A stretch of DNA of 64,000 nucleotides from Klebsormidium nitens (GCA_000708835.1 DF237134.1:1-64000); one strand, 5' to 3'; shown: positions 5,546-60,749, numbered from the stretch's first letter. Notes: a model not told the origin generated them from the sequence alone. Numbers and translations: made by a program.

Positions 5546-8500
5546 TCAAACTTTTAACGGATGAACTGCCGCATCCATCCTCCTAAATGCTGTCCGTATC
5601 CTATCTGCCATCTGCTCGTCTTCGCACTCAAGCTCCTTGCTCTCGTAGTCGAACTTCGCTTGCACCCCGTCCATCTTGACCGTCAACACTTTCGCCTCCT
5701 CGTCTAGATCCACCGTCCCAAATAAGTCTCTCAACAACCTTCTTCTTAGCCTCAACTCGTCCCGTTCTGACACACTCCCCGTGCCAACTAGAGCGAGCCT
5801 CTTTTCGGACGCCCCAGCGTCCAGCTGGAGCACCAGCGCCACCACCGAGTCCGCGACCATGTCCGCAATCGGGTCGGACGCCCACTCCATCACAAGCAGC
5901 TCGTCCGACTCGTGCCTGACCGTCACCACCCCGTGCACACTTAGCGACTCGACCTCCGCCTTGTCAACTGTTACCACCCCCTCGTACAGCTGCTCTAACC
6001 GTTGCCGCAAGGAGAAGAAGGAGCCCCGGTAGGGGAGCGACTGCCGCTGCAAAACGCTCCCCGAGCTCAGCTGCGTATACGTGTGCAAGTCTGCCGGGTC
6101 CATCAACTGGTAAGTGAAGCCCTTTTTAACCAGGAGCCCGCCCACTTGGGTGCCCTCCCCCGGGGTCTCGGCCGCCAGACGGCCGACGGTCTTGGCGGTC
6201 TTCTCGCTTGTGAAGTGGAGCTCGACGGTTTGCGTGTTCTTGGGGGTCAGCACCTGGCAAGAAACGGGAGTTCGGAGCTTTTCTCGGAGCTACGCTTTGA
6301 GTTCACGAGGTGGTTGACACGATCTGCAAAGTTTGAGTAGCGCCCTCAGAGAAAATCCTGTGAAGCTAGGAAAGTCTCGCCCAGTTTGACACGTATGCGA
6401 CCATTTGAGTCTGCGAAGAAAACGATTGGAGATGAAGATGAAGCTAGCGATTGCGCCGCTTCCAGAACGAGGAGGACCGTCGGTTTCTGCACGTCGCAAA
6501 TCTAGCACGTCGTCTTTATGAGACCGCTCGGATGTTGCGAAGACAAGGGCGAGCGACACACCTCAACTGTTGGCAGCGTCGAAAGACACTGTTTTGGCAA
6601 AAGTCTTGGACAAAAGGATGCATTTGAGTACGAAGGCCTTCTGATCGAACCTTAGAAACAGGGGCAGCAATTATATGCCCCGGAAAGCGGTCAACATAAC
6701 ATGACGTTTGGGTTGAAAAAAAGGCCGAAATTGCGTCAACAGAAGCATCCTCGACCCAGAGCTTCGCAACCGGACATTAGCTGGATTGAGAAGCACCCGG
6801 CTGTTCAAATGGCGCCTGGTACGCTCCGTCAACAGCGGCTCAGTTTGCGAGCGGAAATCGAAGCCTCGTGGGCTCTCAACCAACGACTCGTCACGAAAGC
6901 GAAAAAATTCACGTGGATTCCTAGCAGCAGATAGCTCTCACGAAGCGCTTCTTATCCCTTTCCTCCTACGCACACACGACTTACCGACGCACCCCATCAA
7001 TCTGCACACCTCACCTTGATGTCCGTCCCCGCAAACACGGTGTTGAGCTTGCTCTTGAGCCGCCCCATCTCGTTGGCCTCCCCGTGCACCAGAATGATGT
7101 TGGGCGGCCGCAGCTCCGTCAGGAAGTCGCTGGTCTGCGTGTAGTCCGCGTGCGCGGAGAAGGAGATGTAGTGCACGCTCATGCGGAGCGGGACGGGGAG
7201 GCCGCTTTGGAGGACCACCTCCTTGGGCTCCTTCAGGATCGTGCTCGCGAGCGTGCCCTCCACGCTGTACCCGGGCACGATGCACGCGTTGCGCTTGTCC
7301 TAGAAATAAGCGAAGATTAAATCTGGTGAAGAAAAGCTACATGTGTTGCGCAGGAGAATGTTGGGGATGTTGATGGATCGGACGTGTGCTCGCCAGCGTG
7401 CCCTTCAAGCTGTACCCGGGCACGATGCACGCGTTGCGCTTGTTGTAGGGAGAGTGACCATTGTGAGCAGGAAAGGGCCCCTTTCACAAGTATGATCAAA
7501 ATCCAGGTGATCCAGCAGGAATATTAGTGAGGGTATTCTCCGCGCTGTTCCCGGATCGGCTACATGCGTTGCGCCTGTTGTGGGCGGGAAGGAGGAGCGG
7601 ATAAAATGGACAAATCTGTAACGGAGTAGAGAGGAGACGAGTGATTTGGGGTTATGATCAATCGTCGCGTGGACTCAACTTTACTTCGATGCTTTATCCT
7701 TTTGCTGAGGGATAAGAGGACGACAAGTGAAGGTTCAGAAATTTTCTGTACGTGCTCCGCGAAGAAAGACCGCGTGCTCTGAACAAAGGGCTGCGCAAGC
7801 AGTTAAATATGAGGACCACGCGCACGCTCGTATCCTGTACTTAACCTTCTTGACAACGCCTTCCTGAGAGGCAACAGGAAGATGAAGTCCACAGTATCCG
7901 CAAACCGCCAGTGGTCCAAGAGACCCTCAATCACAGTAAACCTTAGATATAAACGGTGGGTTTCGAGATTCAAACTGTACAGCAGCTCTTGAACGGAGAA
8001 AGAAGTAGATTGACACGTGGCATGCTCACCTGGCACCACATGTCAAACAGCTGGCGCGACATGCCGCTCTGCAGCATCCCGGGGCTGGCCATCACAACCG
8101 ACGGGCCCACGTCCTCGAACTCCCGGATACTCCGCAGATTCGATATGAACTTGAAATTGAACGGGTTGTCGATCTCGAACTGCCCCCGGATGCGATCATT
8201 CATCGAATTGATGTACGTCTGGTACACGAGCAGCGACTTCTGCGCGAGCGGCGACGCATAGTAAATGGGCACGTGCTGGATCTCGGGGTGCGCCGCCCAG
8301 TACTCCTCCATGATGAGCAGCAGCTCCTGCGCGCGCCCGAGCGCGAACGCGGGGATGAGCACGCGGCCGCCCTGCATGACCGTGCTCGCGATGATCTCCG
8401 TGAAGCTGCACGGAGAAATTAGAGTCGTCAGCATTGGGGGGATAGTTCGTAAATGGAGCTCTAAAGGAGTGGCTCGATTCCCCCTTCGAAGCGGCCATGA

Positions 8501-40400: not shown

Positions 40401-43400
40401 CTGACTGCCAGCACACGCAAGTGCTCGTTTCAGCCCGTAAGCACACGAAGCCGTATCGAGTACGTAAGCACGACTTCAAACATCTCGAACTTTCTCAAGT
40501 CTTACTTCCGACCAATCGAGCAGGGACTGAAATGAGGAAGACGTTGCCAGCACAAGCGTCCTGCAAAAGGGCTCAAACCCCTCACCTGCCTCCTTGGGCT
40601 TCTCTTCTTTGGCCGCCGGCGCCTCCTCCGTTGCTGACGTCACCTGGTCCACCACCCCCGTCACCGCAGCTACCCCTGCGTCCGCCGCCTCCTTCACCTG
40701 CTCCGCCAGCGAGGGCGCGTCCTCCTTGGCCGCCTCGACAGCTGGCGCCGCCTCCTTGGTCTCCTCCGCCGCCGGCGCAACGGCATCCTTCACGCTCTCT
40801 ATAACTTCCTCCACCTTCTCAACCACGGGCTCGGCCGCCTCTTTCACGCTGTCAACCACGTTCTCAACTGCCTCGGCAACCGGTCCCACGACATCGCCGA
40901 TCCCCCCAGTCTGGATCGCCCCAAGCTGGTCCCCAACGTTGTCTGACGCCCCGGTGACGGTCTCCTTCGCCTCCTCTACGGCCGGCTCGACTTTCTCAGC
41001 CACGGGCTCTACCGCCTCGGTAACGGTCTCCTTGGCGTTTTCTACCAAGGGCTCCGCTTTCTCGCCCACGGTATCCGCAGCATTGGTAACAGTCTCCTTA
41101 ACCTCTTCCACTATGGGCTCGACCTTCTCAGCCACAGGCTCGGCAACCTCCTCAACTTTCTCGATCACGGGCTCGGCAACCTCCTTGACCTTCTCGATCA
41201 CGGGCTCCGCCACTTCCTCGACTTTCTCAGCTACCGGCTCTACAACTTCCTCAACCTTCTCGATCACGGGTTCAGCGGCTTCCTTGACTTTCTCGGCAAC
41301 CGGCTCTACGACTTCCTCGACCTTCTCGATCACGGGCTCCGCCGCTTCCTCGACTTTCTCGGCAACGGGCTCCACAACTTCCTCGACCTTCTCGATCACG
41401 GGTTCAGCCGCTTCCTTGACCTTTTCGGCTGCCGGCTCTACGACCTCCTCGACTTTCTCGGCGACCGGCTCTACGACTTCCTCGACCTTCTCCGCAACCG
41501 GCTCGGCCACTTCTTCGGCCTTCTCGACCACGGGCTTTGCAACATCCGCGACTTCGTCAGCAATGGGCTCGACGCCCTCGGTCACGGCTTGTGCGGCGTC
41601 TTTGGCGTCATCAACGACATCCTCGACGGTCTCCTGGACGGCTTCAGCGGCGCCCGCGTTGGATGAGTCGTCGGCATCGGCCTCCTCGGGCTTCTCGGCG
41701 GCCGGGGCGGGAGCGTCGTCAACCTTCTTGCCTGAGAAAAGGCCAGCCTCTGCAAATGAGGAAGAGAGTGGTCAGGTTGGATAATAAGTGAGGGGAAATA
41801 GGAACGGAAAATGTGAGCTGCTCCCACGGAGGCTGTCAATCGAATCGCTACAAACGAAACCGCAGGGTCGTGAAGGAGGGGGTGAATTCTGACGACCTAG
41901 CTGAAACAAGCTTCCACAGAAGTGCAGACTTACAGAAGTGCAGACTTCCAGAGGAACGTCGTCCTTCTGTCCGCACTAATGTACACAACACTGGCACGCA
42001 GCAAAACATGTGCAAAAAGGACAAGTCCTTACTGCGACGACCTCAGAGCACAATCAATGTCCTCGAAACGTTTCACAAAGTTAGTGCACAGCCCTACGCT
42101 TGAGAAGATCGACAATATAACAACGTGCTGACTGTCAAACAACCTAAATGTGCTTAACAGCCACAAACAACAGATGATCACACTACTCTGCTTTTGATAC
42201 CACTCACTCTGGATCTCCTGGGTCTCCGTCTTGATCTCATCGCTAGCGGCAGCCACAGGCTCGGGCTTCTTCGTCTTCGCGAGCTCCTCGGCACCTGGGA
42301 GCTTGTCCAAAACCAGGTTCGACTTCTTGAAGGCGGCCTCGAAGGGGTTCGTGATGCCGTCTGTGCCGAACTCAGCCCCCTGGTTGAGCTTCACGTTGAT
42401 GTCATCCGTCTGCAGGATACACGGGCCAAAGTCAATCGCGTGTATTTGTCAAAAGCCAAGTGTTCCGATCAAGAGGCCCGATATTTGTGATCTGACAAAG
42501 CCGTACTCATTTCGAATACTTCAGAAGTATGCAACCGACCATGTGCACCAAGGTAATGCTCCAAAACAGTGCCGTCACAAGCAGAGGCGCAGAGTGCTTC
42601 CCTTTCTGTCACTTCGAGTTTAGCAGGTTGAGACTGGGAAGTAAGTGCTCACATCGACTCTCTCCTTGGTAGTCAGGCTGATGCGGTCTTTCTGCAACAA
42701 CAAAAGGATGGGTGGATGTCAGGAATACCGTTATCCCCTTCCGCGAGTCAGGAGAAAGTGCACGACGAATCATCGGCAGGAGGGACACAGCAACGTGGAT
42801 AGAGAACTGGCCCCCTCCCAGCAGAGCTCCAAAGCAGCTGAGACGCCAAAGAACAAACCGAGCTTACCGTGACAGACAGGACGGTGACGTTCACTTTTTG
42901 ACCCATTTCGAGGTGCTCAGCAACCTCTACCCGCTCGCTTCCTGCAAAATCCAACAGCTCCAGTGAATCTCAAGGGGCTTCCCATACGAATCTGTCAAAT
43001 TGAGGACTAGGGGGAACAATTTTCTGCCCCTACAGCTTGCCGTGCAGATTGGGAAGCTTTGCTAGCACAGAAAAGATTCACCCCCCTGGACAAACCTTCC
43101 TCTAACTGGCTGATATGAAGCTGCATTACTTCTTGTAAGCAGCTCTTTAAAAAAGGCAGTTAATGGGGACCGTCGGAAAACAGGACGCTTACCCTCTCCA
43201 ATCTCGCTAGCATGGAGCAGTCCCTCGACCCCATCCTTCAGCTCCAAGAAGGCCCCGAAGGGGGCGATGCTGGTCACAGTGCCCTCAAACTTCTGCAGAG
43301 GGAAAGGATGGAAGCGACCTTTAAAATGGTAGTGCAGAATGTCAAGTGACAAAAGTCAAAAACAAAGAGAGAAGCTACAACCACTGCAATACATTTGCCT

Positions 43401-51647: not shown

Positions 51648-52479
51648 ACGTTCAGACGCCGGTTACTTTTAATAGTACTTTAAGTTGACTTGAGAAGAGG
51701 TGACTCGTGCAGGAACGCGCTGGCTGCTAGAGCTGTAGTTGGCCTCTGCCCGGTAGCTTGTATGAGTAGCATAGGGTCGCTCGGTGCTTTTGCTAAGGTT
51801 TCTTGCTACCGCATGCGCGAAGACGCAATCGTCGACAATCTGGCGGCCGACAGTGCCGGCCTTGGTAACACTCGGCTGGTAACACTGTTACAACTCCGTT
51901 CTTTGGCAGAGAATTGGTAGGAAAGGGTTCGCGAGGGCGCGCAATTTCCATAAAGTTCGCCGCTCTCGACGGAAAAGACCGTTTACTCATTGGTTAAAAG
52001 ATTTGTCGTTAGCGCTCAGAAACCGGAGGCCGTACAGCCACAGATCGGACGGTGACACACCGCGTCCCGTCTAAACATTCAGTCAAGCTGAAACCGTCGG
52101 ATATGGCGGAGCGTTGGCCACACGGTTAGTCCGTACGAGTTGGATCCACGTCAGCTCAGATGCAATGTCCAGGAAACGCGACTTGCTCACCGATTGGTTA
52201 CATTTTCGGAACCCCCGCAAAGTAACCGAGTGAACGCGCGTCGGGTTTTTGTTCAAATCCAATGCATCAACCTATGTCTCAGGTCAGCTTCAATTTGGTT
52301 CCGCGTTTCGTGGTTAACAATAGGTAATGGGTTTCGTAATCCAACGCAGCCCCTCTGCCCGGGCATAATTGTACTACTTGCGACACTGAGCTAGGCTAGC
52401 GAGACTGCATTTACCGCTCAGCCGCAGCGCTCGCCTACATGACTAGAATTCTGAGGTCATCAGCAGTGCGCCAAACGCA

Positions 52480-55400
52480 ATGGCGGCACAGCTCGCTCAC
52501 AGCACGGCGCGTCAATGTGGGCCCTCATTGCCGGCGGCATCTAGCAGGTGCAGTCAGGGCGTAGAATGTAACCTGCCCGCACAATTGGGCACACCACATC
52601 GCATTTGCGCATCAGTGGCAATCCTGAGAACTTCTGAGCACCGGAGACTTTCTGCGTAAGTTGCTTCACCACCACCTTCTTCAGCTTTTGTCAGAAGGAT
52701 TTGCAGAGAATTTTGCTGAGTTGGCTCGTATTATCTGTATTCAAGAACGGTGCAATTTTAAGGGCAATTGGTAGACTGAAAAGTGAGGTATGTTCAGTCA
52801 GAACAATCTAGCAATTGTCAATCTGGTGCTTGGGAATCAACAGGGTGCATAGTAACAAGGAACTTCTTCAAAAACTTTGCTGATACTTTTGGTTTTTATT
52901 TGAGCTGCAGTGGGGGATCAAGCGGCTACAGCGGGTATCAGCAGCATCCTCTTCCATTTTCAAGTGAGAAGATCTCTTTCATTCACACCACCAAGAAAGC
53001 GAGGCCCTGGGAACAAGTCGCAGCTTTTCCTTATTTGATCAGATCAAAAGGTTGTAGCAAGCAATGCATGCAAGCCAAGGCTTTTGTATCCTTGAAATGG
53101 TGCTTGAGGAGGGGTTGCAACTAAACTTTCGTGCAGAGTTGGACAACTAACTCATAAGTAGAGGCTTAGGATTGGGGAGATGGTCAAATTCGATGATCAT
53201 CCTTACTGTAGACCCACAATGTGGTTGTTCTTTCAGAAACTTCAGGGAAACGGTTTTCCTGCCTTGCCAAGAAGGATGACAAGAATGGGGACGATTTGAC
53301 CAAGAAGAATGGCAAGCAGAAAGAGCCAAAGGAGAAGGCGGTCATGGAAGACTTCCCCGTCCCCAACTGGGAAGGGATTGAAAGAAAGGTCAGTACTCCA
53401 CCACCCTTTTTCCGTCTCCATCAAGAATATACACTGTCTGCAATACGTGCATGATGTTTCTGACCAATCTAGATGCCTTGTCCACATACGCCCCTGTAAA
53501 GACGATTGCGAATCTGTGGGATAATCAAGTAACAGCATGGGGTCTGGGTCAATCAAGTGGATATGGGAGCCCCTGTATTGAGATTGAACTAGTACCCTCG
53601 TTTTTGTGCACCAGGCGCACTTCTCAGATGATGCTTCAAAGACCCTCGTTTTGGAGAAGAAGACGGGAAAGCGGGAGTACAACTACGATAAGGAGTTGGA
53701 GAAGCTGCAGCTGGAGTTGGTAAAATTGCAGGAATGGATCAAAAACAAAGGTGAGAGGCAGCGCTTTTCAGGTGGAACTGCGCTTTGCATTGATTCCTGT
53801 GCTTGTTTCGCATCTACCTTTTTGAAGCAGGATGTCGCTGGAGAACGACCTTCTCCAAAATATACTTATCTCACTAACATACTGTCAATCAGTCGCTGCA
53901 AGTTGGAATATCTGTAGCTTTCGTAACAGTCATACTCCTCTTGGGGACAAATAGCGTTTCTCCTTCCTTTGCAGGATTGCGAGTTGTCACCATTTTTGAA
54001 GGCCGGGATGCAGGTGAGTTACAAAGGCCGGTACTGCAGGCCTTGCCGTTTCGCAAGGCGTTTCGGGCTTATATTTGGTCAGACCAGACCAAGGACACTG
54101 TGTATGTAGTAGTTCAACTTTTGTCTGACCACAGATTCATACTAAGAATTCTTACACAGAGCGAACCTTGTCAGCCAGGACGGCTGTCTTTGTTTCTTTT
54201 TTCCTGAGGCTTGTTCTTCCTTGCTCACCTCCTTTCCTCTCTAGCCTTGTAGCCATTTCGCCAAGTCGACTGGGCTTTCTTTCCCAACAACATTTCTTTT
54301 GTGCGGTGCAGCTGGCAAGGGCGGCATCATCAACACCATCTCCTCGCCTCTCAACCCGCGCATCGTGTCGGTCCACGCATTGGGGACGCCGTCGGACCGT
54401 GAAAAGACGCAGTGGTATTTCCAGCGGTACGTCAAGGAGCTGCCGGCGGCGGGCGAGTGGGTCATCTTCGACCGCTCCTGGTACAATCGAGCGGGCGTCG
54501 AGAAGGTGCGCCAAATCCAGCAAACCCGCTTTTGCGCAAGGATCAGGAGCCATGAATCCCCACGTGCACTTCTCTCCAATCTCAGCACACACCGTTCTGT
54601 TTTGTGCAACGTGAAATGGAAGAGCAGAGGAAGAGCCAAGTGGCTTTTCGGCCTTGGTTGACACCTAAGTTTCGTTCCGCTCGGGCGATGGACTCGCTGT
54701 GTAACGAAAAGTGGCGCTTGTCTCGGCCGTTCCTGCTACGTTTTGGCCTTTCCTTTCGGGTCCTACTGACAAAGATTAGCCCCTGAAGATTGATTTTGAT
54801 AGCTCACTCGGCTTGCTTGGAATCCTTATCGACGTCATGCGTTGCCTTCAGGAAGCCCGAGCGCTAGACAGGGGTTTGAGCGGAGCAAAGTACGATCTGT
54901 ACGAATGTCGTTCAAGGCCGGTAAAGCTGAATTGCTTCGACTTCCCGTCCACTGGTGCTCCCTTTATACACAGTTGTCTCTAAGGCAAGACACATCCATC
55001 ATGGTTGCGATTGCTGTGCAGGTCATGGGCTTCTGTACAGACGAGCAGTACACAGAGTTCCTGGACTCGTGCCCCCTCTTCGAGCGCATGCTGGTCAGAT
55101 CAGGTGAAGCCTCATCCTTGATTTTTCACGATGCACAGGTTCGATCTCTGACGCTCTAAACCAGACAAAGACATGCTCCCGATGTTCAATGCGTTGTTTC
55201 AATCAATCTGGTACAAGAACTCAGCAAGCCCCCTTTCTTGCCGGTTTTTGATGATTGAACACTCAGGCGTGGTAATTTCAACGCGCACATTACTTAAGAT
55301 GTCTCGTCGAGCTCGACCTCTTGCTCGGGACAGATAAAGAGCGGGAGAAAGGCGCGAGGTGGTTTTTCATGGTCGAGTTTAGACCGTGAGCTGCTTAGCG

Positions 55401-57028
55401 CACTTACACGTTGTTGCAGGTATCATTCTCCTCAAGTACTGGGTATCTGTCAGCCCGGAGGAGCAGGAGAGGAGATTCAAGGTACGATCTCCAGTCCTCC
55501 CCAATCGCACACAACTCATCTAGACTCGGTTCCGCTGCCGCTGTTAACGCGCTTGTCTAATAAAGCCAGTAATACTTTGGGTGTGTTTTCGCAGACTGCT
55601 CATTTGGTAGGGTTCTCGATCTCGACTGTCGAGGGTACCATGTGAGTATTGTGTTAATGTTTCTCCCTACTTAGAATCCGTAGTGGCGCTGACTATTTGC
55701 CTTCAAGCAAAGATCGTATCGCATCCTGTCCAGAACAGCTCCTTTCTTCGCTTGAGTTGAGTTGAGTTGAGTTGAGTTGAGTTGGGTCGAGTCGAGTCCC
55801 TAAAACCCTAAAACCCTAAAACGATAACCCCTAAATCCCCAAATCCCGCTCACTTTTCGTCCGTGCTTTTGGATTCCAGGAGCGCCTGCACCGGCCCGAG
55901 AAGCGGTGGAAGCTATCACCCATGGATCTGTACGCACGATCGAGGTCAGCATTCTTACCGCCTCTGCTCGTTCTGCCTTTCTAGCCGCCCTTCGTTGCGT
56001 GCACAGGTGTTCAAGAACCTCTATTATCCAAGGTCCGGGATACATGATGAGTGCGACTTTCTTTGCAACAGAAAGCAACCGTGAGCGTTTCCGCCCCTGC
56101 TGTGGCCAGAACCCTCTCGAGGAACCACGTCTGATTGAAGTTGTGCATACGGCGGTGTCAGCCAAAAGAGAAATGCTGGCAACAAGGTCCCGGTCAGTGA
56201 TGAAGCTTGTCGCTGAGCTGCCTGGGTACAGTGATAAGCAACTTCGCCAAGGTCGTTTGAATCGATCTTTTTCAAAAGCTGGGGACCTTGAACTCTCGTG
56301 CCCTTTGGCAGGTGGGGCGACTACTCGTATGCGAAGGACATCATGTTCCAGGCTACGGACACTAAGCAGGTAAGCTGATCCGCCTACAGGCGGCCTCCTT
56401 AAGCTGCCTCTTGACCCGTTCAAAAAAATAGAGTCCTTTTGCGGACGCATGTTTTGGAATCCCGTTCATTGATTCGTATATGCACTCTGGTGCTCTATGG
56501 AGGTCGAAAGATGCTGCCGGTTTCCAATAGAGGCGTCGTTCGTTTGTGGGCTGCCCCCGAGACGCTTGTGGGCACTCCGTCTTTCTCTGCTGGGACGAGG
56601 TCATCTGTCTACTCTTTACTCCCCGCGTTTGTAAACCGTAGTAACCCTTCTTATCCATTGTTGATTTGCGTCCTCCCCGCGTTTGTAAACTGTAGCATCG
56701 CTTCTTGTCCATTGTTGATTTGCATCCTCCCAGCCTTTGTAAACTGTAGCATCGCTTCTTATTCATTGTTGATTTGCGTCCTCCCAGCCTTTGTAAACTG
56801 TAGCATCGCTTCTTATCCATCATTGGTTTGCGTCGACAGTGTCCTTGGTACGTGATCCCCGGGGACGACAAGAAGGCGGCCCGGCTGAACACCATCCAGC
56901 ACATCCTGGACCAGTTCAACTACGAGGACCTCATCGTGCCGGACGACCTGGAGCTGCCGCCCCGGCAGGAGGACAAGTACGTGCGGCCCCCGCTGCAGGA
57001 CCAGACTTTTGTGCCGCAAAAGTTCTGA
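52480..57028 (+). CDS. ppk2: Polyphosphate kinase 2 (class I, P. aeruginosa PPK2-type) with putative plastid transit peptide, 11 exons
   Basis: Spliced motifs YDKELEKLQLELVKLQEWI, FEGRDAAGKGG, LNPR, QWYFQRY, IFDRSWYNRAGVEKVMGFC, FERMLVRSG, KYW.SVS.EEQ.RRF, WKLSPMD, YSYAKD.MF.ATDT, PWYVI.GDDKK.ARLN. Phase-compatible 5' exons at 52480-52655, 52911-52963 and 53237-53388 (these are less certain than the core). Confidence 0.92.
55753..55846. repeat. (TGAGT)n microsatellite followed by an interstitial telomere-like (CCCTAAAA)3 tract, in PPK2 intron 8
   Basis: About 6 GAGTT units, then CCCTAAAA x3 at 55798-55821 and degenerate CCCTAAA-like units to ~55846. Confidence 0.85.
56621..56839. repeat. 54-bp minisatellite x4 at the 3' end of the last PPK2 intron
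   Basis: Units start at 56621, 56675, 56729 and 56783 (CCC.GC.TTTGTAAAC.GTAG...GATTTGC.TCCT); the last unit ends in the acceptor GACAG. Confidence 0.92.
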
Positions 57029-58653
57029 TGAGACGATCGAAAGTCAGTTGTGGAAGTACCGTAGCTACATAGAAGTAGGATCGAAGTAGGTGGAAGCAGG
57101 TACGTATGCTTTGTAGCCGCAGCGGGGTTGTATTTGTAAATGCCTGCGATTAGTGCAACGTAGTGTTAGGCTCAGCTCTTGTAGGGTTTGTAGAACGACT
57201 GGCACTTGCAAGAATTACTTAGGGAGTAGGGTCGGAGCATCCAGTCGACAAGAACCAGATGTCTGTCAAGAGTTCAGGATAGGTAATAAGCCAGGGTTTG
57301 GGAAGCTTTTGAATATCGTTTTTAGGCAGAAGTGTTTGTACGCCCCATCGACTTGACCTTATTAATGCTCCTACCTATCGACTGCATACATATGTACGAG
57401 GCGAAGCCCTTTGTACTGCAGCTGCTACACGTGCCAAAACCCTGGTCCAGGGCGGTTAAGGGCTTGATGCAGGGACTCGTCGCTTTGTACGATCGGACAC
57501 GCACTCGATCTCACTTGAATCAGCAGGACAGGTTCTCTCAACGCGAGACTCGTATACACTGACTGGTCGGAACCACGTGACACTCGTCTGCTATAATCTA
57601 AGGGTACTTCCTGATTATTTCAGCGGACGGTCCTTGACTGCATGAACAGACATGTTATTGAAGACCGACGGTACATGTCAGCCTGCATTTCAAGCATCGT
57701 CAAAGATCAGTGACAAGATAAGTCCGACAGGTGAATATGCTAAAGTAAATGTCGTGCGATCCATTCAACAAAGTCGCACAATCAGATTGCAGATTGCATG
57801 CGCATATATCATGCCTGCATGCATGCACGAGTGAGTCGCGAACGATCGGAAGACTGTAACGGGTCGCGAGCTAGCTGAAACGCGGCTGCTCAAGAATCAG
57901 CAATTATAACTTATATATATCCAATATCAGAGATCAAGATTCTCAAAGTCCCTAGCTGTTGTTGTACTCGTATTGGATCGATCGCCGATCCTTGTTTGAT
58001 GTGAAGCAGATACCTGCACGAGGCTTGTGGTTCTAGCGTCTGATCGTGTGCTCAAGCATGGCGAGAGTGTTTCAAGCTCAATTCATGCTGATACCCATCA
58101 TCTGCAAAGAGCAGGAAGAACGTCTAGTCAAGTCAAGGCTATGCATCTATAATGGTAACCGGCGGAGCCGATCAGTGTTGCGGCTGCACGTAATGGGCAC
58201 TTGCCGCCTGCGGCCGCCATCCGAGTTGTACACGGCAGAGTTTGATCCAGGATCAGCTGTCAAATGTGTACTTAACAAACAAGAGATTTTCTCATCCACA
58301 ACCGCATTGTTTCCCGAAGGACTCGGGACGAGTTCGGTGACATGTAAGGAATTCTGACGGTTTTCAAATGGAGAGCAGAGAGGAACGAACTTAAAGTCAA
58401 GAGCTTGTCAGCAGCAACTCGCCCCTGAAATTCAAAACTAGATTGTAGAACCAAAGTAGTCTCGGCCGCTGGATAGAAGCAAATACGTGACCACACGATA
58501 TCGCTGAGATGGGGATGCATACGGATCAACGGGGCGACCACTGTACATCACCCGTTGACCCGTCGCGCTTCTACCAGTGGGCAGCTGTATCAACATACTG
58601 AGGTGTATGGAACTTCCGCCAAACCTTTCTGCTTATCCAGACTGAAAACTCAC

Positions 58654-59170
58654 CTCTGCTGAAATTCCGCAACAAGTTGAGGCAATCGTCCCAATCTGGG
58701 GGACGGGAGTGCCCGTCCAATAGCAGCTTCACATAATACGCAAAAGTGATGACAATTCCACTGCGTCGCCCTGTATATCCTGTTCTTCACGCGAGTCAAG
58801 TAGTCAATAACCTTCTCAATCGTTGCCGTCGGTCGCACCTTGGGAGGCCACTGGGCTCCCTGCTTGTATCTGACCTTCACCGATTCTGCATTCGTCATGA
58901 GCTTAGACGAGACGTTTGCAACGCGGCACCGGACTGGGTCGGCATACAGCTCCAAACGCACCGTTTCCAGAGGGGCATGCAGCAACACCGCAGAGTGACG
59001 AGCGTCCCACACGTTTGAACGCCCTCATTCACTACCCAAACCAAAAGTGAGACTATCCAAGAAGAAGCTCGCAAGCCCGACTGGGGTGGTCATTCCTGGT
59101 TCGTCAAATTGCCCCTGCACGTGGTCTACTTGGCAGAATGCGCGTGCCGGGGGAACCGCTCGCGCAGCTC
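58654..59170 (-). pseudogene. Possible permuted papain-like (PPPDE/LRAT-like) peptidase exon, interrupted by an in-frame TGA
   Basis: Frame reads ...LDSLTFGLGSE*GRSNVWDARHSAVLL...IYRATQWNCHHFC. It carries His and Y-x5-NC-x-HF motifs and ends at a canonical GTGAGT donor (58653). TGA at 59027-59025. Confidence 0.4.
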
Positions 59171-60749
59171 TGCAATCACGTTGTCAGCACCAATGATGAC
59201 TGGGGACTCGTTGTCAGCATTCCGGGGCCTCTGAAACCCCACCCTTACCGCAATTGCCAGAAGCGAACGGGGCGCTAGACAGGGTTGAGGCATTGCTGCC
59301 CATGTTCAAGCACTCAGGCTATTGGAGCACAAAACAAAGGAGATTGTTTTCTGCTGAAATCGTGTCCCCTTCTTCTATTTTACCGTCAAGCTTAATCCTA
59401 GTTATGCTTCTAGACTTCGAGAGCGCCGCCTTCCCCTGAACCTTGGGGATCATCAAGATCAAAGTAAAGACGCATCGGAAAAAGGACGGCACTTGCAGAA
59501 CAGAGATTCATATGGATTTGGCTAGGTCTCTTGGGGCTCTTCTTGAGGTGACGTGACCTGTTGCGTCGCATCCAAGCTTTCTCGTGTATCCTCTGAATTT
59601 TCCCCCTTGTCGTATCAACTAAGTATGACGACGTGACGTGTATCATCGTTCATTCTGTAAATTCGAAGTAACGAGATTGCACATTCACACTACCGTAAAC
59701 CGTACAAAATTTACGCGCATCCGTCCCGCACGTATGATGATATCGATCTGATGATAGCTTGTCAGCTAAAAGAGACAAGCAAAATTTTTGCTTGACAAGC
59801 AATCTTTCAGCTTGACAAGGTGACACGCTGGCGATCGTTGTTCCGAAGAGACAACCTGCTGCACGCAGAGCACATGCGCAGCGCCCTTGCTGTTGTTCCA
59901 CCCGAAGCAATCGTAGCATGCGCCACTGATCAGCTAGACTACTACAATGCAGTTCGCCGCTGAACGATCTGCCGCTGTGTCGCTGGACTGGTCACCGTAA
60001 AAATTCACGATTGATTTGCTTTGGCTTCCAAAGTACCTCAGCAAAAGCGAATGACAATTCCATCAGGCACCTCGTTTTCTCGTCCAGAGGCAACTCTGCC
60101 TCTTTCTCTGGGGTATGCGACATAGAACAAGCCCCAGATTTGCGCTGTGTTCGAAACAGTCGGCAAAAAGCAGCACCGATGTCTAAGCCGAGACCCGGGT
60201 AAGCGAAAGGGCGAGCTATTAGTATGGGCAAATCAGTTGTACAGCCTCCGTCTATGTAGTGGGACTTTACGTTACCAACGCTTCGCGACTTCTCCCCCGT
60301 GTTCGCTCCGACCGGCGTCTCCCTTTGTGCTTGGCATCCCTAGTTGCATCCGGGTCATTGAAACTGTGAGGCAGGTTTACCTGCATAACAAGGGTTTGAT
60401 GCGCTGAGACTTCGGAACGTAGAAGCAGAGAAGAAGGAATGTTAAGAAAGTCTCAAAGGACCAGAATCTGCTGGTGGCGTGAGGAATGAAGCAATATTCT
60501 TCGTCCAAGCTGCAGTTGAGACGGGGATAGGTTGGATATCAGAGAATCTCCTCGAGCAGGTGCCTGCTTCCAGAAAGCGGCCACAAGAAAACGGCAAGGT
60601 TTGTCAGATGTCTGCCGGTCGAACTACTCCAAGCAGAAGGCTCATGATTGGCGCAAGAGCTCCCGCATTGCAACACACTCAATTGGACAACACAGAGGAC
60701 TTCCCGACAAGTGTTTCTCACCCTCGTTCAACGAACCTCTCGCTGGTTT

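Follow-up and report, generated by a model that had tools for sequence, protein, structure and literature searches.

Reviews attribute polyphosphate (polyP) synthesis in eukaryotes to VTC. A 2019 New Phytologist review recognized neither a bona fide PPK1 nor a bona fide PPK2 in plants or other higher eukaryotes, and a 2024 review reported that PPK2 is lacking in Chlamydomonas. Of the PPK2s proposed for eukaryotes, Whitehead et al. 2013 (PMC3680246) found only those of Ostreococcus tauri and Nematostella convincing, and both are intronless. Here we describe a polyphosphate kinase 2 (PPK2) gene of Klebsormidium nitens, located on the + strand at 52480-57028 of a 64,000-nucleotide (nt) window (GCA_000708835.1 DF237134.1:1-64000). 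The window is the whole stretch of DNA that was analyzed, and coordinates refer to it unless a contig is named. The gene has 11 exons and 10 introns. Taken as a whole, the explanation that we favor is probably correct: a bacterial class I PPK2 was transferred to eukaryotes, is now a functional nuclear gene of this streptophyte green alga, and carries an organelle-type leader.

Gene structure and nuclear setting

The gene model comes from a three-frame reading of 52400-57100 in which each exon boundary was checked. The start is the first ATG downstream of an in-frame stop 11 codons 5', exon phases are compatible, and the coding sequence totals 1206 nt (401 codons plus TGA). All 10 introns are of the GT..AG type and 224-516 nt long, and intron 5 interrupts the Walker A motif E-G-R-D-A-A-G-K-G-G within its second Ala codon. 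The exons are listed below; Pfam ranges are positions of PF03976, FtPPK2 is the reference enzyme for residue numbers, and L002 is a contig from a relative that carries the same split gene.

Exon 1, 52480..52655 (+): ATG and 58 2/3 codons; acid-poor Ser/Ala/Arg leader; no Pfam match
Exon 2, 52911..52963 (+): Gly/Ser/Tyr/Gln-rich portion of the leader; acceptor and donor kept in L002
Exon 3, 53237..53388 (+): end of the leader; F-S-C-L-A-K-K switch at 53254-53274; Lys/Asp/Glu-rich linker at 53269-53388
Exon 4, 53615..53750 (+): clade-specific A-H-F-S-D-D at 53615-53632; first PPK2 helix; Pfam 5-27; matched by tblastn of orthologs
Exon 5, 53975..54013 (+): beta-strand and first half of Walker A, E-G-R-D-A, with the catalytic Asp (FtPPK2 Asp62)
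Exon 6, 54312..54505 (+): second half of Walker A, A-G-K-G-G, at 54312-54325; Walker B F-D-R-S-W-Y-N-R at 54467-54490 with the class I Asn; Pfam 43-106 (E=1.9e-26)
Exon 7, 55022..55103 (+): PPK2 core; Pfam 107-132; 76-83% identity to orthologs
Exon 8, 55420..55481 (+): start of the lid with the first lid Arg (FtPPK2 Arg174); aligned to FtPPK2 158-175; Pfam 135-154
Exon 9, 55880..55944 (+): lid, with equivalents of Arg178 and Lys184; K-L-S-P-M-D at 55910-55927; Pfam 155-174
Exon 10, 56312..56369 (+): PPK2 core; matched by tblastn of orthologs; pN (proportion of nonsynonymous differences) 0 against L002
Exon 11, 56840..57028 (+): last strand and helix, polyP-pocket K-K-x-x-R at 56870-56884, C-terminal tail, and TGA; aligned to FtPPK2 218-248; Pfam 196-225; pN 0 against L002

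The genomic context is eukaryotic and nuclear. An exon for the CPSF73 C-terminal domain (PF11718, E=1.7e-45) lies at 5546-6253 (-), and base composition is uniform across the window. When exon 6 was compared exhaustively with 1.84 billion representative proteins in HMMER, two near-identical products emerged (98% and 95% identity), both of them prokaryote-style gene calls that continue into the intron. These relatives gave only intron-read-through calls; in public annotation, the K. nitens gene may be absent, shortened, or fused. The source contigs, L002 (Logan run SRR23617307) and L001 (JGI metagenome 3300060285), both carry the same split gene. DNA similarity to L001 is limited to the 3' part of exon 3 and to exons 4-11, in exon-shaped footprints. 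Compared with L002, the exons are 78-96% identical without indels, whereas the introns are only 55-71% identical and differ in length but keep their GT..AG ends. No exon contains a stop or indel in this comparison. The boundaries of exons 4-11 are confirmed both by this exon-shaped conservation and by in-order tblastn matches of Closterium and other orthologs.

Selection was assessed by Nei-Gojobori counts between the window and L002. The ratio of nonsynonymous to synonymous rates (dN/dS) is 0.039 for exons 4-11 and 0.197 for exons 1-3, and the gene is under strong purifying selection. Exon 3 is strongly constrained (pN 0.062; pS, the synonymous counterpart, 0.669), and changes in exon 2 are mostly synonymous (pN 0.076, pS 0.257).

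PPK2 is overwhelmingly prokaryotic, and contaminants were among earlier eukaryotic reports (PMC3680246). Nevertheless, we consider it extremely improbable that the gene is bacterial contamination, an assembly artifact, or a decaying pseudogene. These readings are opposed by ten GT..AG introns, one of which falls within the Walker A codon run, by the eukaryotic neighbors, by the same split gene in two independent assemblies of relatives, by a dN/dS of 0.04, and by the intact state of all catalytic residues. An earlier note, made from the sequence alone, had described a complete class I PPK2 over 11 exons, with an intron-split Walker A, D-R-S-W-Y-N-R, and K-L-S-P-M-D, and had argued that it is not bacterial contamination. 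The exon reading and the ordered coverage of PF03976 bear out the first claim, and the introns, the CPSF73 exon, and the split gene in two related algal contigs bear out the second. The three phase-compatible 5' exons and their peptide were also read exactly as stated there.

Several features occur within the introns. In introns 1 and 2, blocks at 52656-52690, 52975-52996, and 53056-53085 are near-identical to L002 and the rest has diverged; these may be splicing or regulatory elements. Intron 8 contains an interstitial telomere-type repeat (55752-55847), made up of a (TTGAG)x9 microsatellite followed by about six telomere-like CCCTAAA(A) units. Intron 10 contains four copies of a 54-bp unit with 90% identity (56619-56834), the last ending a few bases 5' of the exon 11 acceptor, and this intron is 89 nt shorter in L002. 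Antisense open reading frames (ORFs) at 54152-54664, 55800-56450, and 56362-56919 (-) were rejected as genes because they have no Pfam match. An Rfam scan of the window gave no match.

Enzyme class, relatives, and bacterial origin

Profile, structure, tblastn, and clade-signature comparisons of K. nitens PPK2 were run exon by exon. The Pfam ranges listed above follow the 229-position PF03976 profile in exon order (exon-wise hmmscan), and exons 5 and 10, too short for a profile scan, were matched by tblastn of orthologs. Using the residue roles published for FtPPK2 (PMC4748334), we find that the catalytic residues are kept: Asp62 and Lys66 of Walker A, Asp117 and Arg118 of Walker B (D-R-S in exon 6), Arg174, Arg178, and Lys184 of the lid, and Lys228, Lys229, and Arg232 of the polyP pocket. 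Only His76 is changed, to Pro.

The residue after Walker B is Asn in class I, Gly in class II, and Glu in class III (PMC8776046), and exon 6 encodes the class I Asn (D-R-S-W-Y-N). Among PDB structures, exon 6 matched the class I proteins of Francisella (5LL0/4YEG) and Sinorhizobium (3CZQ) best (~1e-21), followed by class II 3CZP (2e-16) and class III (1e-12 or weaker). Every scanned exon scored best against NCBIfam TIGR03707, the PA0141-type PPK2 family (exon 6, 104 bits; exon 11, 31 bits; exon 4, 21 bits), and exon 6 reached 63 bits with the next family. The TIGR03707 equivalog cut-off of 301.8 bits is passed by three full-length orthologs, P0170 (365), P0004 (358), and P0153 (332). Judged by these residues and profiles, the K. 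nitens gene is a complete class I PPK2, as the earlier note had classified it. Given the class I signature and TIGR03707 as best family, its most likely chemistry is Mg2+-dependent transfer between polyP and GDP/ADP; we infer the substrate preference from these same features.

Relatives were gathered by cluster look-up and word searches. Eukaryotic orthologs of 395-485 residues include Closterium sp. NIES-68 CLOM_g4217 (GJP40345.1, annotated as "hypothetical"), two Closterium sp. Naga37s-1 paralogs, two EukProt transcripts, two Logan proteins on mRNA-length contigs, and one ENA protein. Trees were quick searches with support from the Shimodaira-Hasegawa-like approximate likelihood ratio test (SH-aLRT), in versions of 104 and 39 rows, and drew on 80 taxonomically labeled bacterial homologs. 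The eight eukaryotic sequences form one clade with a long stem among 92 bacterial rows (SH-aLRT 100 in both trees).

The K. nitens gene was placed relative to this clade by exon-summed tblastn and clade-signature columns. The top six tblastn matches to the window all come from the eukaryotic clade (457-495 bits), compared with at most 430 bits for bacteria. The window exons have the clade residue at 11 of 15 signature columns, versus 0-3 in the 92 bacterial rows. They retain the bacterial state at one column, as expected of an early-branching clade member. H-[YF]-P-D occurs about 20 residues before the PPK2 domain in all full-length eukaryotic orthologs, and its His is rare in bacteria. By these measures, K. 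nitens PPK2 is a member of a well-supported eukaryotic clade that includes Closterium.

Intron positions were also considered as a sign of common descent. The Closterium gene has one intron (after residue 210) and the Pycnococcus gene has one (residue 280), and neither position is common to the ten in the window. This result is neutral; because positions are not shared, the ten introns would have been gained in the K. nitens lineage or lost in the others.

Some PPK2s of eukaryotic appearance fall outside the clade on long branches. These four (P0139, P0134, P0153, and P0155) are the Pycnococcus and Pseudoscourfieldia proteins (named as PPK2 in NCBI), the EukProt "Hpha" transcript, and a protein with a 290-residue Asn/Ser/Asp-rich N terminus typical of AT-rich protists. 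The leader of the Pycnococcus and Pseudoscourfieldia proteins is Ser/Arg-rich, and they also have a Lys-rich tract. It may be that PPK2 was acquired by eukaryotes more than once, with a leader added on each occasion. No named land-plant PPK2 was found among the top matches of the protein searches. A bryophyte ortholog would be expected to outrank bacterial matches, as the algal ones do. We describe a land-plant ortholog as not detected, which falls short of proven absence.

The best bacterial matches, at 70-74% identity to the ortholog P0170, come from at least 10 phyla. Planctomycetota, Calditrichota, Verrucomicrobiota, Chloroflexota, Bacteroidota, Vibrio, Acidobacteriota, and two cyanobacteria are represented, along with others. 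The bacterial backbone is a star in both trees. Both features agree with published work in which transfer within the PPK2 family is rampant (PMC11968564). The row nearest to the eukaryotic clade is a metagenomic protein, P0179 (SH-aLRT 84-90). Overall, the clade amid bacterial diversity, the ten introns, the CPSF73 neighbor, and the low dN/dS are the features of a domesticated bacterial gene, and the comparisons support a horizontal origin from bacteria.

The earlier note had allowed either horizontal or endosymbiotic acquisition and suggested a phylogeny to separate cyanobacterial from other donors. Endosymbiotic transfer from the cyanobacterial plastid ancestor, rather than a later horizontal transfer, would suit a plastid-directed product. 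Cyanobacterial class I PPK2s are ~72% identical, and the 104-row tree places the algal clade in a weak group (SH-aLRT 81) that includes two cyanobacteria. However, the cyanobacterial sequences are not sister to the algal clade in either tree; P0179 lies nearer, and the star backbone singles out no donor phylum. The spread of best matches over many phyla is what rampant transfer would produce, prasinophyte PPK2s group apart from the streptophyte clade, and the reviews cited above place no PPK2 in Chlamydomonas or land plants. We regard an endosymbiotic origin as improbable. The horizontal half of the earlier proposal, in contrast, agrees with the position of the clade amid bacteria.

The N-terminal leader and its possible destination

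Comparison with the two contigs supports exons 1-3 as genuine coding sequence. L002 keeps the ATG, a 58-codon open frame without indels, the GTAAGT donor, the acceptor and donor of exon 2, and the acceptor of exon 3. Reading through the exon 2 donor meets a stop in L002. An exon 1-like ORF in L001 starts M-A-S-L-A-Q-H and has a C-N-Q-G block; the pattern that it shares with the window is C-[SN]-Q-G. The sole internal Met of exon 3 is Leu in both contigs; because it is not conserved, translation must start upstream of it.

The leader of the window protein is ~87 residues long, acid-poor, and Lys-free, and it spans exons 1 and 2 plus ten codons at the start of exon 3. Exon 1 lacks Lys, and its residues include 3% Asp+Glu, 19% Ser+Thr, 16% Ala, and 10% Arg. 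In five of six full-length orthologs, a stretch of 55-68 residues, of which 2-6% are acidic and hardly any are Lys, ends at A/S-K-K and is followed by a charged, Lys-rich linker. In the sixth, P0171, the motif rule matched only within the PPK2 region and the leader end is undefined. The Arg content of the leader is ~10% across the clade. Ortholog leaders begin M-A-S or M-A-A, with an uncharged Ser/Thr-rich start. Over the first 45 residues, the helical hydrophobic moment peaks at 0.21-0.40 across the clade and at 0.36 in the window. No hydrophobic signal-peptide core was found in the leaders of K. nitens PPK2 and its orthologs.

The switch at which the leader ends is conserved and follows the pattern [hydrophobic]-x-[C/A/S]-x-A-K-K. 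The window and L002 have F-S-C-L-A-K-K, and L001 has L-V-C-H-A-K-K; Closterium and other orthologs have V-A-A-K-K, T-C-A-K-K, V-S-A-K-K, and V-H-S-K-K. The bacterial homologs (median 300 amino acids) lack this plan of leader, switch, linker, and H-[YF]-P-D, although some have short basic tails. In composition, the extension is that of a transit peptide: absent from bacteria, acid-poor, rich in Ser/Thr/Ala/Arg, and without a signal core. The acid-poor, Ser/Ala/Arg-rich leader of the earlier note is confirmed in composition, and orthologs carry analogous leaders that end at A-K-K. Its plastid-like cleavage motif fared less clearly: the A-K-K switch is conserved, but the sequence around it fits mitochondrial R-2/R-3 processing about equally well.

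From this composition, organelle targeting is the likely role of the leader. The plastid specifically has roughly an even chance, perhaps slightly less; in its favor are the length of the leader, its M-A start, and a helical moment that is modest. When bacterial PPK1 makes polyP in the cytosol of plants or yeast, the product is toxic (PMC6973038), which makes confinement of PPK2 to an organelle plausible.

Several observations weigh against this interpretation, and they bear on two alternatives. In the first, the leader would serve as a presequence for mitochondrial or dual targeting, and the enzyme would buffer matrix GTP/ATP from mitochondrial polyP. Algal plastid and mitochondrial leaders are hard to distinguish in general, and a leader that is Arg-rich (10%), Lys-free, and acid-poor also suits presequences. 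The residues before the switch (K-R-F|S in the window, R-E-F|S in L002) are similar to the R-2/R-3 sites of the mitochondrial processing peptidase. At 55-87 residues, however, the leaders are long for presequences, their helical moments are modest, and L001 has no Arg near the switch. The uncharged M-A-S/M-A-A start of orthologs is also that of streptophyte transit peptides. We consider a mitochondrial or dual destination unlikely.

The second alternative is that the extension does not target the protein at all. PPK2 would then be cytosolic or nuclear, with a disordered regulatory or polyP-tethering tail, and Lys-rich tracts can act as nuclear signals or polyP tethers. The linker is conserved in its Lys-rich character across orthologs, and some bacterial PPK2s (e.g., P0040, P0175, and P0179) have similar basic N-terminal tails. 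Exon 1 is also weakly constrained: it is barely better conserved than intron 1 against L002 (78% versus 71%), with pN 0.19, pS 0.33, and pN/pS ~0.56. Such weak constraint is typical of leaders. The sharp change of composition at A-K-K, after a Lys-free and acid-poor stretch in all full-length orthologs except P0171, is the pattern of a cleavable leader and argues against a simple tail. The toxicity of cytosolic polyP argues in the same direction, as does the classic Ser/Arg/Leu-rich leader of the possibly independent prasinophyte PPK2 from Pycnococcus. A nontargeting tail seems to us somewhat less probable again than a mitochondrial presequence.

Three further points count against our preferred explanation. 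Word searches of 5.8 billion proteins with P0004 (Closterium) and P0170 listed no full-length product of the gene, and public annotation thus offers no independent model for it. A degenerate pattern for the exon 1/2 junction had no match in metagenome contigs, a collection that possibly lacks such transcripts. In addition, class I PPK2s are not alike in the nucleotide or the direction that they favor (PMC8776046), so the sequence does not reveal which way the reaction runs physiologically.

Under the organelle-leader explanation, a bacterial class I PPK2 would have been acquired horizontally before the K. nitens and Closterium lineages split, and a front end specific to eukaryotes and ten spliceosomal introns would have been added later. 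The predicted precursor has four parts. The ~87-residue leader is most likely a cleavable organelle-targeting peptide, with the plastid likelier than the mitochondrion. The [hydrophobic]-x-[C/A]-x-A-K-K switch is a probable processing site; we infer both cleavage and compartment from composition and motif. Next come the Lys/Asp/Glu-rich linker and H-[YF]-P-D, a basic tail that may tether polyP, and finally the predicted complete, single-domain class I PPK2. There, in a Mg2+-dependent reaction within the organelle, GDP or ADP would receive the terminal phosphate from polyP and become GTP or ATP. In reverse, it could synthesize polyP when nucleoside triphosphates are in excess. The role in darkness or desiccation proposed by the earlier note is speculation.

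More tentatively, PPK2 could be one arm of a complete bacterial-type polyP cycle in an organelle of streptophyte algae. In such a cycle, PPK1 would make polyP from ATP, PPK2 would return GTP/ATP, a polyphosphate glucokinase would phosphorylate glucose, and granule binding would fall to a CHAD protein. Algal ancestors of land plants would have possessed this set, and it would have disappeared toward embryophytes. We consider this extended scheme doubtful.

Neighboring sequences and comparison with known systems

Other sequences in the window and on the related contigs were noted. A 369-amino-acid ORF at 40476-41585 (-) consists of amphipathic repeats that match Apolipoprotein A1/A4/E, YtxH, apoLp-III, and phasin profiles, and it looks like a late embryogenesis abundant (LEA)-type or lipid-droplet/desiccation protein. 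Downstream of PPK2, 58642-59306 is 74% conserved with L002 5964-6619 and contains a 120-amino-acid (-) ORF with an N-C-H-H-F motif and no Pfam match. Reverse-transcriptase (RVT_1) ORFs occur at L001 3135-4436 (-), about 4 kb upstream of PPK2; the window has nothing comparable at such a distance.

Neither the PPK2 family and its classes nor the proposal that algae acquired it by transfer is new. O. tauri PPK2 was published in 2013, and the Closterium ("hypothetical") and the Pycnococcus and Pseudoscourfieldia (PPK2) proteins are already in databases. Full-text literature on PPK2 or polyphosphate kinase in Klebsormidium, in streptophyte algae, in Closterium, or together with horizontal transfer yielded no description of this clade. 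The novelty is smaller than the earlier note implied; the streptophyte clade, its intron-rich member, and the conserved leader plan appear undescribed. The gene reveals no new kind of enzyme, but gives biochemists a class I PPK2 from a eukaryote to compare, and it illustrates cleanly an old gene transfer from bacteria with gained introns and a leader. It also offers a concrete, testable entry to the question of whether streptophyte algae keep a nucleotide-exchanging polyP pool in their plastids or mitochondria, and the algae concerned bracket the origin of land plants.

The bacterial-type PPK1s of Physcomitrium, Ostreococcus, and red algae are likewise domesticated polyphosphate kinases, with many introns and N-terminal extensions (PMC3680246). 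PPK1, however, has an unrelated phospholipase D-like fold and a phospho-His mechanism, and favors polyP synthesis. Bacterial class I PPK2s of the Pseudomonas aeruginosa PA0141 type (TIGR03707; 4YEG/5LL0, 3CZQ) resemble K. nitens PPK2 in having a single PPK2 domain of ~230 residues. They have in common the Walker A Asp and Lys, D-R-S, the class I Asn, the R-x3-R and Lys of the lid, and the K-K-x-x-R pocket. Their identity is ~60-67% to K. nitens across exons and 70-74% to its ortholog P0170. In contrast to these bacterial enzymes, K. nitens PPK2 is encoded by 11 nuclear exons, has ~135 extra N-terminal residues and Pro in place of FtPPK2 His76, and its activity is predicted.

O. tauri PPK2 (Q015Y3) and the other published eukaryotic cases (PMC3680246) are also bacterial-type PPK2s, and O. 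tauri is a green alga whose gene has been read as horizontally transferred. Those genes are intronless and no targeting leader was reported for them, whereas the K. nitens gene has ten introns; O. tauri was compared by description. K. nitens PPK2 is placed in a separate, streptophyte-type clade with Closterium, and the prasinophytes Pycnococcus and Pseudoscourfieldia fall on long branches elsewhere. The closest counterparts are the Closterium NIES-68 protein GJP40345.1 and the Naga37s-1 paralogs, which have the same leader, A-K-K switch, Lys-rich linker, H-Y-P-D-D, class I PPK2, and C-terminal tail. They differ in having a single, unshared intron and a longer N-terminal extension of ~200 residues.

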